A DNA stretch of 64,000 nt from Trichosphaerium sp. ATCC 40318 (GCA_038496445.1 JALMLS010000255.1:124001-188000); one strand, 5' to 3'; numbered from the stretch's first letter, positions 1 to 63,312 are shown. The notes: generated by a model not told the origin, from the letters alone. Program-made: numbers and translations.

Positions 1-2378
1 CTTCATTTTTTAGCTTATTTTGAGCTTAGGTCGAGCATCAATTAAAAATAAATAACTTATCGGATTGGTATAAAGTCATTCCTAGAGATCTTAGACGATT
101 AGGTGGTACTAGCCTTTTACAGTATGTCAAAATGATTCCCCCTTTTTTTCTTTTCTCAAAAAAAGTGTAAAACGTAGCGACTTACGCAATCAACAGGCAT
201 TATGGTCAATCAGTGCATGAATTATTGAAGGACGTATATCCAGATCAAGTATGGGATATGTCTGAATACTCTAAAACTCTTACAGCAGTACCTCCAAACT
301 ACTGGAGTCGTAAAGAAAACAGGAAGAATTTTATGATTGAAGCTGAAAAACAGTTGAAAATACAGGATCTATCTGATTGGTATCGTGTTTCAGAGCATCA
401 TATAGCCATGTTAGGTGGAGGTAGTATACGTTATCACTGGCCCGAGGTTGTAAGGGAACTACATCCAGAGGTATCATGGGATATGGAGAGGTTCAAACAA
501 ACAGATAAAAAATCAACTCAAAGGTATCGTTCAGCTTTCGTTTTTTGGTTCTCGTTCTGGTTCTTTCTTATTCGAGTTTAGATGGCTTTTACTTTCTCTT
601 GAAGAAGTGTTAGATGGATATGATTTAGTAGAGGAGTATAAACTTGGAGTAGAAAAGAGTCAAGTTATAAAATCTATATCTCTTGATATTTTTATTCCAC
701 AACTCAATGTTGCTATTGAATATCAAGGTCATCAACATTATTATGATATTCATGGTACATATGGCCCAGCTTCGGTTCAAGAGACAAGAGATCTAAACAA
801 GAAACAACTTTGTAGCGAATACGGTAACAACCATACATCAACTCTGTTTTTGAAAAAAAACCCGCCCTAACCGAATATCTTTATCTTTCACGTGCTCACT
901 GCTGACATGTGATAGGTATTACAATTATTCCTATTCCTTTCTGGTGGAATCCTACTGATAAAGAAAGTCTAGCTGCTACTATAGATTACTACTTGTACGT
1001 AGCAGAATACTGTCAACAAACCAACTTGTAACTCTTTTAGACCTGATTCGAATGCGACTCGTTTTCCTTACCCAAAGAATACACCACCTCTTCTTCTCAT
1101 GCCTGATTCAGTATCTCGTAAAGGTAAGAAAATGCAGACCATTAATAAAGGTAAACCAATCTCCGTAGTGAGGAAAAAGGAGAAGATGACATTGCTTAAA
1201 CATTATGATCCAAAAAAGGATTACACCGGTTGGTATGCTTGTCAGCTATTTTGTAGACTGCTTTTTGTTGATTTGTGTACAGGATGATTTCTGAGAAGCT
1301 TGATGGTATACGTGCTTTATGGGATGGCGTTGATTCGTTATACTCAAGATCTGGAAAGCTCATACCTGCACCAACCGAGATATCTAGCCTTTTGCCAAAG
1401 AATATTTCACTTGATGGAGAGTTGTGGTATGTATTATCTTGCTTACACGTGATTTTTTATTTCTTTAAAAGTTTATTTCTTTTAGGCTTGGTCACAACAC
1501 ACGAGAGACCTTACATGGTCAGTTGTATAAGAATAAACCAGATTGGAACGGTATGTGTTCTGAAGAGCATTGGTTTTTTTTTTTTTCATTCCAAAGTTGT
1601 AATGTTTTTGCTTTGTAGGTGTCAAGTTTATGGTGTTCGATGTTGTGATACCCAAATTACCTTTCAAAGGTGTGGTTTTAAAGTATGATTTCTTTAAAAG
1701 TAACTCGAGATAGAACGCTATGAACGCTTAAAGGAAATTATTAAAGAGTTAAACTTGCCTTGGGTTCAATGTGTTCAGGAGCAATTCTGTCACTCTCGCT
1801 CGCATGTATCGCAGCACCTAAGTTCTGTGACTTCTATAGGTGGCGAAGGAATAGTATTAAGAGATCCGCAAGGGATGTACATACCAGGTCGTCATGAAGG
1901 CATTCTAAAAGTAAAAGTGAGTGAAAACTTTTTTACAGTCGTTGCTTCTTTTTCTGCTTCTGTACCTTTCTTTGCCCTCCTAACATTTGATATCTTCAAA
2001 GCCATACTACGATATGGAAGTTCGTATGCTACGACCTCACTCAAGTGGATATCTGTTATGTGAATTGTATGTCTTTCTTTTTTTAGTAAAGCACAAGAAC
2101 TACAAAGATGGTTAACTTAATGAACACATAGGCCTTCTGGAGACAACATATTTGTGCGGTGTACAAAACAAGAACAAAGGGATCCACCTGCACAAGGCAT
2201 GGTACTAACTGTAAAACACGAGGTACATACGATATTTGTCATTGTGTTTGTTACACAACATTAAAATTGTTTTTTTTTATAGGGTGTTAATAAGAATGGT
2301 AAGCCCAGATTTCCCTTCTATTTCAGTTGTAGACTTGATATGACATGGCAAGATGTTGTCAACGCTGTAAAGGATTAA
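1..2378 (+). CDS. 5'-partial multi-exon gene: helical repeats + Vsr/DUF559-like PD-(D/E)XK endonuclease + ATP-dependent DNA ligase with OB domain
   Basis: GT-AG splicing gives one frame. Repeats: 'EHQLKINNLSDWYKV..LGGTSLL' and 'EKQLKIQDLSDWYRV..LGGGSI'. Nuclease: 'LDIFIPQLNVAIEYQGHQHY...RDLNKKQLCSEYGITIIPIPFWW'. Ligase motifs: 'WMISEKLDGIRALW', 'LDGELW', 'FMVFDV', 'GGEGIVLR', 'ILKVK', 'GKPRFPFY'. Stop TAA at 2376-2378. Confidence 0.88.
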
Positions 2379-2861
2379 GATGTACATAGTGTTGTGACAA
2401 CACTTACACCAGAATAAATACTTTTTTGTACAGTAAACACTGAGTGGTAAGCAAATTGTGGTAACGATTGAAGGGTATGAAACTTCCTCTGGCGATTACA
2501 GCATATCCCCTACATGGTATAGACTTGAAGTCCTTAATATCTAGCAATGTAGGATAGAAAGAAAACGTATTTCAAGAAGATGCAGCACGTTTTCCTGTTG
2601 TTTTGTTAGACGCTAGCTGGCTGTTACGTGACTGCCAAAAAATCACTTACGATGAATACTGGAAGGTTTCAGCAACTGAGATACGGCAGCAGCCACATTT
2701 TGAACTTGCATCAATGAGCCAACTAGTTTAATATGATCAACTCTTAATACACCAGGGAGATCTTATTTTGGGAACAAGCTACCATCCTTCTTTTTGTTGA
2801 CATTTAACTAGCCTTGATCAAAATACTGTGAGTTATTAATGCGAACTGGAATTTTATGTAG

Positions 2862-3539
2862 GCATTCTTGATGGCCGTTACAAAGAATGGGACACATCAG
2901 GTAAATTGCAAGTAGGCACAACAAGAAAAAGTGACAAAATTATTGGTCGCTACAGACAATGGTTTCTAACTGGTAATTTATTTATCAACACAACCTATAA
3001 TGATGAAGGAATCAAACATGGAGAAGAAACAAAATACTACTTAAACGGTTCCCTAAAGGAGAAAAACCAACTTTGAGAATGGGAAAAAAAATGTGCCTTA
3101 TCAAAAATGGCTAACCAAATGGTACTTTGATTAACTCAAGTATGCTTAAGGAAGGTAAGCCTGTAGGCACTTCAAAAGTGAGTAAAGACGAGGGAAAGAC
3201 ATATTACATTACTAATTATGTTGATGGGAAAGAGAATGGTAAAGCGTCAACAGTTGATGATAATGGTATATCCTTTTGTCAGAATGTTTTATGAAAGATG
3301 GTGCACGATGTGGCGTTTATAAGGAGTTTTATCCTGACGGAAGTGTCAAAATGGATGTTGAATATAAAGGTGGTTTAAGACAAGGATTTGAAACACAGTA
3401 TGACGTAAAAGGGAATGTGACAAATCAAGTTGATTTTAAAGACGGTGCTTTAAAATTCAAATCTAAGTTTACTTTTACTCCATCACCAATACAAATTGAT
3501 GAAAAGAGTCAATTTAACTCAGTAGTTGAACTTAGCTAA
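2862..3539 (+). pseudogene. MORN-variant (YwqK-like) repeat protein, frameshifted
   Basis: Repeats 'GRYKEWDTSGKL', 'GRYRQWFLTGNL', 'GEETKYYLNGSL', 'GVYKEFYPDGSV', 'GFETQYDVKGNV'. The frame breaks near ~3065, ~3112 and ~3272 with no splice signals, so this is a pseudogene or sequencing error. Confidence 0.65.
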
Positions 3540-61237: not shown

Positions 61238-61416
61238 CCTCGTGTTGCTTGTATGGTTTTCTAAATTCTGAGTGACGAATTCGTTGTGAACATTTAGTAA
61301 AACTGACTAATTTGGAAATCAAGGATAGCACGATTTATTGCATTTTGGGAAAATTACTTGTAAACTTCTTTTTTTCTCTGAACTGTGAAGTTTCTTGCAA
61401 CCTCTTCCAAGCTAAC

Positions 61417-63312
61417 TTAGCATAGTCTTCCCATTTTTTGAAGTATAGATACTATAGCGTCACCTATATCCTTGATATCTTGCATATCGTTGTAGATCTG
61501 AGCGCTTATACGAACATACAAGCTTCCATTAAATCGTTTGATATTTCCCTCTATTTTGTACTCGTCCCTAAGTGCTTTGTGAATTTTCACTTGTACTTTT
61601 CCGATTGAGTTGTTATGTTCTTCTTGTTGTTCTTTAACAGGTTCCGAAACAGGTAAGCGGACAGTCCTTTATGTCAAAGAAATTTAGAAGTGATTTAACG
61701 AACAAGTTCGTCGTACACTATAGAACCTATCACTTTTCCTTTCAACGACTCTGTTATTTCACCTTTGGAAAAAAAAATAGTTTAGACTTTCGTGAAAATA
61801 CAAGGCGTGTTTTTACCTTTGTACGCCCAATCTGTTTTCCATAACGTTACCAAGTAATTACCTTTTGGAAAAAATTAACATTATACCACAAACGTCATTT
61901 TTGTGTACAAGCCCAGTATGCGAGATTATGCATGTAATCCATAATTTTACGTTTTCCAATCTTTTCATAAAATTGAAGTCCAGTGATAATAGATAAAAAT
62001 GGTGTACAGTCTTTCGTCCCTGTCCAAAAAAATTGAGAATTTAACCCATTTTCATAGCCATGTGAAGTGACAACACTCTTCACCTGGATCACAAAAATAA
62101 GAACAAAAAAAAATTATCCACAAAAAAAAAAAAAAAAAAGAGCTTGCCTTTTCTCTGTGTTCCTTCGCAACATATAAGAACGCTGCAGAGTTACAAGCAT
62201 AAAGCCATTTATCTTTGAACAGATTATCAGCATCTTAAAAAATCAAATCATATTTCACGTGCGTAAATTAGAAGTGTAAAAGTCAGGTTTGAGTGCCTTC
62301 ATGTCCAACTCAATTTGACCAACTGCATGCGCACCATCTACAAGGACAAGGATACCACTAACACTTTCAAAAAAAGGCTGTACACAATATGTGGATGTAC
62401 CGCTTGTGACACATGTCTATTATTTCCTCCACTGGGAATATAAAGCCAGCCGTGCTGTTGATGTGATCGACACATACAAGCTTAACTTCTTGCGATAGAC
62501 CTGCCTCAATGCGCTCCAATATCTACGATAACATACATTAGCATCATCACTTTTTTGGTATCATCAATTCATTGTACGCTATCGGAATCACAAGGTAAGT
62601 CTATGATGACTTTAACAAGTTCAACACCATCTACATCTCGCCTGTATTTGCACGTGTTGTTTATAGCACCTTGAAGACAAATTAAAGGATTTGTATGGCT
62701 ACCTCTCTTACCATATCCAACGCTCAAGTACAGTATCTTTTCTCCTTTTTTGAAAGGCAAAGATTTGATTACTGCGTTGCATCCTGTTGTGGCGTTTTCA
62801 ACAAATACAATATCATCCACATCAGCGTCTTTATGAAAAACACGTGTTAAAACTTTCTAGAGATACCACAAACACGTGACGTACTGACAAATGCAGCAAC
62901 CTTTTTAAGAGCGTACAACATGAAATAAGGCATCTTATCACAAATAAACCTGACTGGTTGCAAGTCCTAAAGTTCTGGTTTACTTTTAACTCACTCCATG
63001 AAGTCAAATTGTCATACAACTTGCTCAAGCCATTGTTGTCGTGCGTAGGTAACGACCTTAGGTCTTGAGCCAAAACATCCATTATCTAGCATCTTTATTA
63101 GCACGTGGTTCATCTTCGAACGTCGTTTTTTGTCAAAAAACTTTTCGCGTGCCTAAGTATATAAAGGATTGATCTAACGCAAAGTTTTTACGCATTGGAC
63201 GTCCTAAATCTGCTTTGATGAATTTATCGCTACAAAACGTTGGAAAAAGCCAACTAGGCTCCTCATCAATGTCTTTAGTTAATTTCCAATCTTCTACAAT
63301 ATAATCTAGCAT
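61417..63312 (-). CDS. PLP-dependent aminotransferase class V (L-cysteine desulfhydrase / Egt2 / CefD-like)
   Basis: 'YLDNGCFGSRP', 'IVFVENATTGCN', 'VDHI', 'LVDGAHAVGQ', PLP lysine in 'FYTSNLHKWL', 'WTGTKD', 'YVRISAQIYND'. Confidence 0.9.

Follow-up and report, generated by a model that had tools for sequence, protein, structure and literature searches.

Judged by its sequence statistics, the closest analogue of the motif described here is HIP1 (GCGATCGC), the highly iterated palindrome of cyanobacteria. HIP1 is 15-300-fold over-represented, occurs both within and between reading frames, is conserved between genomes and is recognized by orphan methyltransferases, and its function is still uncertain (PMC5861425, PMC4390886). 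The subject of the present analysis is the hexamer CACGTG in a 64-kb stretch of DNA from the eukaryote Trichosphaerium sp. ATCC 40318 (GCA_038496445.1 JALMLS010000255.1:124001-188000). That whole stretch is referred to below as the window, and positions are counted from its first letter. A preliminary description of this DNA had proposed that CACGTG is a HIP1-like iterated palindrome in a eukaryotic genome, concentrated in introns, and both parts of that proposal are borne out by the data below. A full-text search of the literature returned no paper tying CACGTG to iterated palindromes or, in that sense, to Amoebozoa. The terms 'motif', 'palindrom' and 'methyl' are absent from the text of the Trichosphaerium genome paper, in which the excess is not mentioned (PMC10521059).

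A pattern search returned 72 exact copies of CACGTG (at least 70 had been claimed), the first at 889 and the last at 63107, corresponding to approximately one per kb across the window. The G+C content of the window is 36.8%, and not about 33% as first stated. Chance expectations were derived from independent bases, from Markov models of orders 1 to 4 and from 100 dinucleotide-preserving shuffles. Independent bases predict 7.3 copies, and the Markov-1, Markov-2 and Markov-3 models predict 9.5, 11.4 and 14.6, respectively; the shuffled sequences contained a mean of 9.8 copies, with a maximum of 17. The abundance is, then, 7-10 times that expected by chance, where 'over 10-fold' had been put forward. 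It is apparent that the excess persists under higher-order models: even the Markov-4 model, which already includes the counts of CACGT and ACGTG, predicts only 36 copies. CACGTG ranks first among all hexamers by a wide margin (z=21 against Markov-3), and the next-ranked hexamers that are not homopolymers are words that overlap it.

The excess is specific for the exact hexamer. Palindromes of the same composition, proposed beforehand as controls, show no similar counts (GTGCAC, 14; GACGTC, 7; CAGCTG, 10). Among the ten xACGTy word pairs, CACGTG alone is in excess, and AACGTG, GACGTG and TACGTG are all found at expectation, so that the requirement extends to all six bases. No general excess of ACGT was detected in the window apart from that contributed by splice donors (see below) and by CACGTG itself. 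In non-coding DNA, the observed/expected (O/E) ratio for CACGTG is 16.

Assignment of the sites to introns, exons and intergenic DNA requires a gene model. RNA contigs from four public runs, covering positions 34200-40199, yielded 15 listed splice joints, and a small generalized hidden Markov gene finder was trained from these joints on the window itself. The gene finder converged on 24 genes containing 223 introns. Of 14 validated introns, 12 were reproduced exactly, and the other two were correct at the donor end. The predicted genes have a mean intron length of 69 nt, a mean exon length of 141 nt and 9.3 introns per gene, in a window with 36.8% G+C. Similar values have been published for the draft genome of Trichosphaerium sp., a long-read-based assembly with 37.7% G+C, 8.7 introns per gene and intron and exon lengths of 75 and 154 nt (PMC10521059). 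That genome comprises 710 scaffolds and includes 1,581 giant-virus-derived genes, and MinION and PacBio reads exist for it (PRJNA826761). The RNA-supported gene used for validation (36973-40069, + strand) contains 21 introns, with CACGTG sites in introns at 37169, 37277, 38071 and 38644 and in exons at 38544 and 39884. Two additional introns were predicted in this gene (37923-37994 and 38025-38129, of 72 and 105 nt). Together they account for 177 nt, which exactly reconciles the coordinates in the record of one RNA contig, X2.

When the 72 sites were placed on this model, 40 fell within introns, in agreement with the figure of about 40 given in the preliminary description. Introns comprise 15.4 kb of the window, and the density of sites within them is 2.6/kb, with an O/E ratio of 38 on base composition and 21 under Markov-1. 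The 13.8 kb of intergenic DNA contains 15 sites (1.1/kb; O/E, 7-10) and the 34.8 kb of coding exons contains 16 (0.46/kb; O/E, about 3-4), while one site, at 49358, lies on an exon/intron boundary. The density in introns differs significantly from those in intergenic DNA (P=0.003) and in exons (P=5e-10). In intron interiors, CACGTG is the top hexamer, with 33 copies observed and 1.3 expected. Circularity of the gene model was considered as a source of this pattern and was ruled out in two ways: the split among compartments was the same when the motif was neutralized in the scoring of the gene finder, and each of the 40 intronic sites is situated in an intron that has to be spliced out for the reading frame to stay open.

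Coding DNA also contains more copies than its encoded proteins require. The 16 sites in spliced coding sequence compare with 4.15±2.0 (maximum, 12) in 1000 synonymous-codon shuffles. By frame, 5, 5 and 6 sites were observed, where 1.2, 2.4 and 0.55 were expected. An excess in all three frames indicates that the force responsible acts on DNA and not on peptides. Two intronless predicted genes in the window, 4349-5497 (382 aa) and 40203-40952 (249 aa), had no detectable homologue in a collection of 5.8 billion proteins, and the first of these carries two exonic copies of CACGTG, one of them within the full 10-bp palindrome ATCACGTGAT.

Intergenic DNA is not uniform in its content of sites. The seven divergent (i.e. 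promoter-side) intergenic regions together contain a single site in 4.4 kb, and the remaining intergenic DNA contains 14 in 9.2 kb. The divergent regions differ from other intergenic DNA at P=0.049 and from introns at P=0.001. One such region, of 1.26 kb (45187-46447), lacks CACGTG altogether. A site-free stretch of 6.4 kb (55892-62255) comprises a 1.7-kb divergent region and two intron-poor genes, encoding a leucine-rich repeat protein and an amino-acid transporter, and its lack of sites is due mostly to the near absence of CACGTG from divergent intergenic DNA. A restriction of the enrichment to transcribed DNA is only suggestive, however, since the promoter-side halves of tandem intergenic regions hold four of eight sites in a hand count. 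The convergent intergenic region at 52063-53619 (1.56 kb) contains five copies (3.2/kb) and only short open reading frames; it may represent long 3′-untranslated regions or an intron-rich gene that was not predicted.

Within introns, the sites appear to be placed at random. Their relative position between donor and acceptor is uniform (Kolmogorov-Smirnov, P=0.54). The numbers of introns with none, one and two sites (186, 34 and 3) match those of a length-weighted Poisson distribution (187, 32 and 4). CACGTG occurs in 37 of the 223 introns (17%), three of which hold two copies each, and the site-bearing introns are longer, as would be expected by chance. They did not differ from the other introns in donor score (P=0.15), acceptor score (P=0.81), rank in the gene, T content or G+C content. 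Counts per gene are homogeneous across the 24 unrelated genes (chi-square, P=0.62), and no preference for particular genes or for 5′-proximal introns was observed. The spacing of the sites is irregular, with a coefficient of variation of 1.1, and no nucleosome-scale periodicity of CpG or CACGTG spacing was seen, although the power of that test is low with 72 sites. A branch point, donor or enhancer signal was rejected on account of the uniform positions, the Poisson counts and the equal splice-site scores. The suggestion that CACGTG might serve as a splicing signal is not supported, since the sites have no fixed position, no strand asymmetry and no link to splice-site strength, and are present in only 17% of introns at Poisson frequencies.

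The effect of the motif is most clearly seen at splice donors. The 5′-splice-site consensus in the 223 predicted introns, with validated examples between 37106 and 40013, is AG/GTACGT; 54% of donors have C at +4, and 55% have G at +5. Because of this consensus, donors are natural near-cognates of CACGTG. Where the base after G[T/C]ACGT is G, the donor is GC in six of eight cases; where it is any other base, the donor is GC in one of 26 (Fisher's exact test, P=1.4e-4). Counts across the whole window show the same pattern, with three copies of GTACGTG and 31 of GCACGTG, as against 23 of GTACGTT and 20 of GTACGTA. It is apparent that the preference for C over T at the first position of the hexamer is strong enough to override the canonical GT donor. 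There are 16 predicted GC-AG introns (7% of introns), of which ten begin with GCACG and six with GCACGTG, so the preference for CACGTG accounts for six of the 16. These six donors are also the only ones among the 40 intronic sites that coincide with a splice site in this way; the remaining 34 lie elsewhere.

Two of the six GCACGTG donors have RNA support. The intron at 38643-38688 (+ strand), in which the donor G is followed by CACGTG at 38644-38649, is confirmed by an RNA joint (38642 to 38689) in three runs. The 58-nt intron at 36274-36331 (- strand) has its GCACGTG donor at site 36325 and a second CACGTG at 36302, and is flanked by the contig pieces 36174-36272 and 36331-36436. The other four, all on the + strand, are predicted introns (19744-19795, 19969-20021, 41996-42051 and 42809-42858). 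Gene finders applied to the Trichosphaerium genome must therefore allow GCACGTG donors. The consensus AG/GTACGT itself departs from the usual GTAAGT and predicts a matching change at the 5′-end of the U1 small nuclear RNA; no U1 gene was found in the window.

The bases adjacent to the hexamer were also analysed. The flanks show two-fold symmetry. A preference for A at -2, mirrored by T at +2, is seen in 55% of cases (background, 32%; P=9e-9), and a weaker one for T at -1, mirrored by A at +1, in 40%. The extended consensus is A-n-CACGTG-n-T, and the extended forms include CACGTGAT (23 copies), ATCACGTG (15), TCACGTGA (9) and ATCACGTGAT (6). The six copies of the last of these, full 10-bp palindromes, start at 5083, 24259, 35565, 37167, 41692 and 51252; the copy at 37167-37176 is situated in the RNA-validated intron 37106-37181, between a branch-point-like CTAAC and the acceptor. 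When introns were read in the sense orientation, A was found at -2 in 19 of 40 sites and T at +2 in 31 of 40, which, despite the T-rich strand, represents equal enrichment over background. Beyond two bases on either side, no sequence common to the 72 contexts was detected. A longer repeat or a miniature inverted-repeat transposable element is ruled out on this basis, the contexts being alike only within ±2 bases. Symmetric flanks around an exact palindrome suggest a dimeric reader acting on duplex DNA rather than a single-strand RNA-binding protein.

The near neighbours of CACGTG behave differently. Taken together, the 18 words that differ from CACGTG at one position have an O/E ratio of 1.13 in the 26 kb of non-coding DNA; TACGTG/CACGTA stand at 0.97 and CATGTG/CACATG at 1.86. 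The one-mismatch words lack the A..T flank signature (33%, against a background of 32%), so decayed copies must be few relative to live sites, a sign that CACGTG is being maintained. Loss of sites seems to proceed mainly through CpG transitions, to judge from the modest excess of CATGTG/CACATG. Both of the transition variants that had been cited earlier, at about 22501 and 55108, exist, but the shared context that had been attributed to such variants is not supported by the flank frequencies. The O/E ratio of CpG in introns is 1.03; CpG is not depleted there and leaves no footprint of decay through heavy CpG methylation. Decay under, or protection from, CpG methylation as the source of the motif is ruled out by this value together with the lack of a general ACGT excess. 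The genome paper lists, in its Table S2, a gene located outside the window, TRSP12124.t1, as 'DNA methyltransferase dnmt5, putative' (best hit Acanthamoeba, E=1.4e-15); by this annotation it is a candidate for CG methylation in Trichosphaerium.

The interpretation that we favour, with moderate confidence, is that CACGTG is a genome-wide double-strand DNA motif kept hyper-abundant by a bias at fixation towards the exact hexamer. Such a bias would favour CACGTG wherever the sequence is free to vary, and the freedom of the sequence to change would account for the observed gradient, in which intron interiors are highest, intergenic DNA is intermediate and exons are lowest, yet still four-fold enriched at the synonymous level. 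The reader would be a dimeric, two-fold symmetric protein that binds or modifies DNA, for example a bHLH-Zip or bZIP-type binder or a methyltransferase of the restriction-modification type. The bias at fixation might take the form of weak selection for a plentiful site with an architectural or marking role, or of motif-directed biased gene conversion; it would not be a raised rate of mutation from a few precursors. A fixation bias acting on all six positions should produce the excess of CACGTG with almost no drain of its neighbours. The one-mismatch words are indeed undepleted, as fixation bias predicts, whereas a large mutation-rate bias from specific precursors would have drained these several-fold.

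A more specific and considerably more tentative possibility is a eukaryotic molecular drive, in which the repair of heteroduplexes or breaks would be tilted towards the exact palindrome by a DNA enzyme system specific for CACGTG. The system would be a nuclease, ligase or methyltransferase, and may have been taken up from bacteria or giant viruses. Copies, which might number about 80,000 in the genome, would be written most densely into transcribed non-coding DNA, GT donors would be converted to GC, and the motif would have no function of its own. The evenness of the sites over genes and positions fits a drive-like pressure more naturally. If this were true, motif-specific biased gene conversion would have been described for the first time in a eukaryote, and a mechanistic model for HIP1-like palindromes would be at hand.

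Other explanations were weighed against the same data. CACGUG might act at the RNA level, enhancing splicing from within introns or pairing with itself as a duplex in pre-mRNA, and the peak of density in introns, the trough in divergent intergenic DNA, the six GCACGUG donors and the three introns with paired copies would all be in keeping with this. We nevertheless regard it as unlikely. Only 64 of the 4096 hexamers are palindromic, yet the motif is one of these, and its flanks are symmetric even on a T-rich sense strand. The variants UACGUG, CAUGUG and CGCGUG, which G.U pairing would tolerate, do not behave like the motif. The sites, in 17% of introns, follow a Poisson distribution at uniform positions and bear no relation to splice-site strength or intron rank, and enrichment extends to intergenic DNA (7-10-fold) and to every frame of exons (4-fold). 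Ordinary transcription-factor sites, such as the bHLH E-box or the bZIP G-box, serving to regulate particular genes, are highly improbable, despite a core and A/T-flanked half-sites resembling those of known bHLH-Zip and G-box sites. That the sites are not of this kind had been argued before and is upheld by the single site in 4.4 kb of divergent promoter-side DNA (compared with 40 in 15.4 kb of introns) and by a rate that is homogeneous over 24 unrelated genes, with random placement at about one per kb. In addition, although this is a weak point, no bHLH protein appears among the published annotation rows listed. An origin from a mobile element seems very improbable, whether as remnants or excision footprints (for example, with termini CAC...GTG flanked by target bases that were duplicated) or as the core of an element that generates introns. 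AT-CAC-GTG-AT does have the form of a footprint, and two of the differences between the duplicated halves of the gene at 9518-14386 involve indels at the motif. Against this, the contexts share nothing beyond ±2 bases and are A/T in only 40-55% of cases at the flanks, the one-mismatch relics expected in the same flank context are not detectable, and enrichment at the synonymous level is found in all three exon frames. To our knowledge, no transposon superfamily makes an AT duplication.

The preliminary description had also raised a mutation or repair bias. In its Vsr-type form, a motif-specific mismatch endonuclease would turn T:G into C:G and so raise the rate at which TACGTG and CATGTG mutate to CACGTG. 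Some observations point this way. The replacement of GTACGTG by GCACGTG at donors is a T-to-C change at hexamer position 1, and the window contains a candidate enzyme, a PD-(D/E)xK-like nuclease fused to a DNA ligase, in the gene at 1-2378 (+ strand). This gene has a PD-(D/E)xK-like exon at 583-822, continued at 916-994, an exon with a KxDG-like motif at 1284-1424 and a confirmed ATP-dependent DNA ligase domain (PF01068, E=1.5e-6) at 1716-2057. Its nuclease-like upstream exon resembles small phage proteins and small viral PD-(D/E)xK proteins in the ESM Atlas, with DUF559 among the weaker matches, and these DUF559/PD-(D/E)xK leads are weak. Pfam returned no hit on exon 583-822, for Vsr or otherwise, no methyltransferase to pair with such an endonuclease was found, and the presence of the gene in the window is probably a coincidence, the motif being genome-wide. 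The T-containing precursors are not drained in non-coding DNA (0.97 for TACGTG/CACGTA; 1.86 for CATGTG/CACATG), whereas our estimate of the flux is that a 15-30-fold excess, fed through two precursor classes, would need a rise in rate of about 50-fold and would cause a drain of about 4-fold. T:G repair is unable to make hexamer positions 2 and 5, and CpG in introns, at an O/E ratio of about 1.0, shows no 5-methylcytosine-driven decay that would call for such repair. With T-variants not depleted and CpG not decayed, a Vsr-type bias is quite improbable. Finally, an artefact of assembly or polishing, or a by-product of low-order composition, is barely credible. The intronic sites are known from an assembly that is long-read based, but the excess survives dinucleotide shuffles and Markov models to order 4, RNA contigs match the window at the exonic sites 38544 and 39884 (no differences are listed) and at the exon edges of two GCACGTG donors, and errors in long reads would not write one exact hexamer at random places.

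Several considerations weigh against the fixation bias favoured here, or limit it. All of the CACGTG statistics derive from one 64-kb window, and the intronic sites are known from the assembly, RNA contigs covering exons only. The data from this window fit selection and biased conversion alike. A bias on all DNA does not predict that divergent intergenic DNA should be nearly free of sites (1 in 4.4 kb); this scarcity suggests either that the motif is tied to transcription units or that a potent binding site is selected against in promoters. The 1.9-fold level of CATGTG/CACATG in non-coding DNA indicates that sites do decay by CpG transitions and that upkeep is not absolute. The reader, moreover, is so far a putative protein.

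The window offers some material on the gain and loss of sites. The gene at 9518-14386 (23 introns) contains a tandem internal duplication of approximately 1.8 kb, with copies at 10976-12405 and 12790-14232 that are 77-97% identical and in which introns were copied together with exons. One CACGTG is common to the two halves, and another two, each at an indel, are confined to the second copy; for polarizing gains and losses, this comparison comprises two copies and no outgroup. Two of the RNA runs, X4 and X6, derive from a relative that is 95-99% (approximately 97%) identical in the exons of 36970-40012, and an unspliced X4 contig (37903-37997) differs by about 10% in the intron 37923-37994. Two or three exonic CACGTG sites are covered by contigs from this relative, and none differs, a comparison without statistical power.

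Other features of the window were noted. An 11-nt micro-exon, CGTTGTTTGAT, lies between two short introns within 39392-39499 in a RhoGAP-actin fusion gene and is present in each of the four runs. Scanning the window for Rfam families and tRNAs gave no hits. Protein searches and a metagenome scan for further DNA of this genome or its relatives likewise returned nothing.

Exact oligomers that are at least ten-fold over-represented are rare, and those cases that are understood, Chi and the DNA uptake sequences, revealed dedicated DNA-processing machinery. HIP1 is still unexplained after three decades. A eukaryotic counterpart adds experimental handles, in that it is richest in introns, can be measured at synonymous sites and is able to override the GT of splice donors. 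In practical terms, motif-discovery and promoter analyses of the Trichosphaerium genome will be swamped by CACGTG, and the density of the motif may be of use in distinguishing native DNA from viral or bacterial DNA that was acquired recently.

Comparison with known systems places these findings in context. The E-box/G-box, bound by bHLH-Zip proteins (Myc/Max, USF, TFE and yeast Cbf1/Pho4) and by plant-type bZIP proteins, has the same palindromic core, and the 10-bp two-fold symmetric flank preference seen here is E-box-like and as expected for a homodimer on double-stranded DNA. Unlike regulatory E-boxes and G-boxes, however, the sites in the window are nearly absent from promoter-side DNA, are spread evenly over unrelated genes and are enriched 20-40-fold in introns. 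By its distribution, therefore, CACGTG here is not a member of that regulatory class, although a bHLH-Zip or bZIP-like dimer is plausible as its reader. With the Vsr/Dcm system of enterobacteria, in which CCWGG is enriched and CTWGG and CTAG are depleted, the present case shares the notion that a correction directed by a motif makes that motif more abundant, and the T-to-C direction is seen at splice donors. It differs in that the T-precursors are not depleted, the enrichment is far larger and CpG shows no decay.

Chi and the DNA uptake sequences (USS/DUS) likewise occur about once per kb as exact words upheld genome-wide by a motif-favouring process. In contrast to CACGTG, they are found in bacteria, are not palindromes, have a strand orientation and are tied to RecBCD or DNA uptake; we know of no such machinery in amoebae. 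The periodic A/T clusters (PATCs) of Caenorhabditis elegans introns are a DNA-level signal that is concentrated in introns and does not serve splicing. They resemble CACGTG in being DNA-level and intron-concentrated, but differ from it in consisting of 10-bp-periodic A/T runs in a subset of germline genes, whereas CACGTG is one exact palindrome distributed evenly across all genes.

The resemblance to HIP1 is the most extensive. Both are exact short palindromes in many-fold excess, with roughly one copy to each kilobase or gene; both are found outside longer repeats, in non-coding DNA and in coding DNA in all frames; and neither has a gene-level regulatory pattern, with selection versus biased repair the matter of debate. 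For HIP1, cognate methyltransferases, conservation across genomes and a periodicity of 10-90 kb have been reported, while the likeness of CACGTG to it is one of sequence statistics over 64 kb. HIP1 is 8 bp long and cyanobacterial, whereas CACGTG is a 6-bp palindrome of another sequence in an intron-rich eukaryote, where, unlike HIP1, it is concentrated in spliceosomal introns and, through their donors, makes GC-AG introns.

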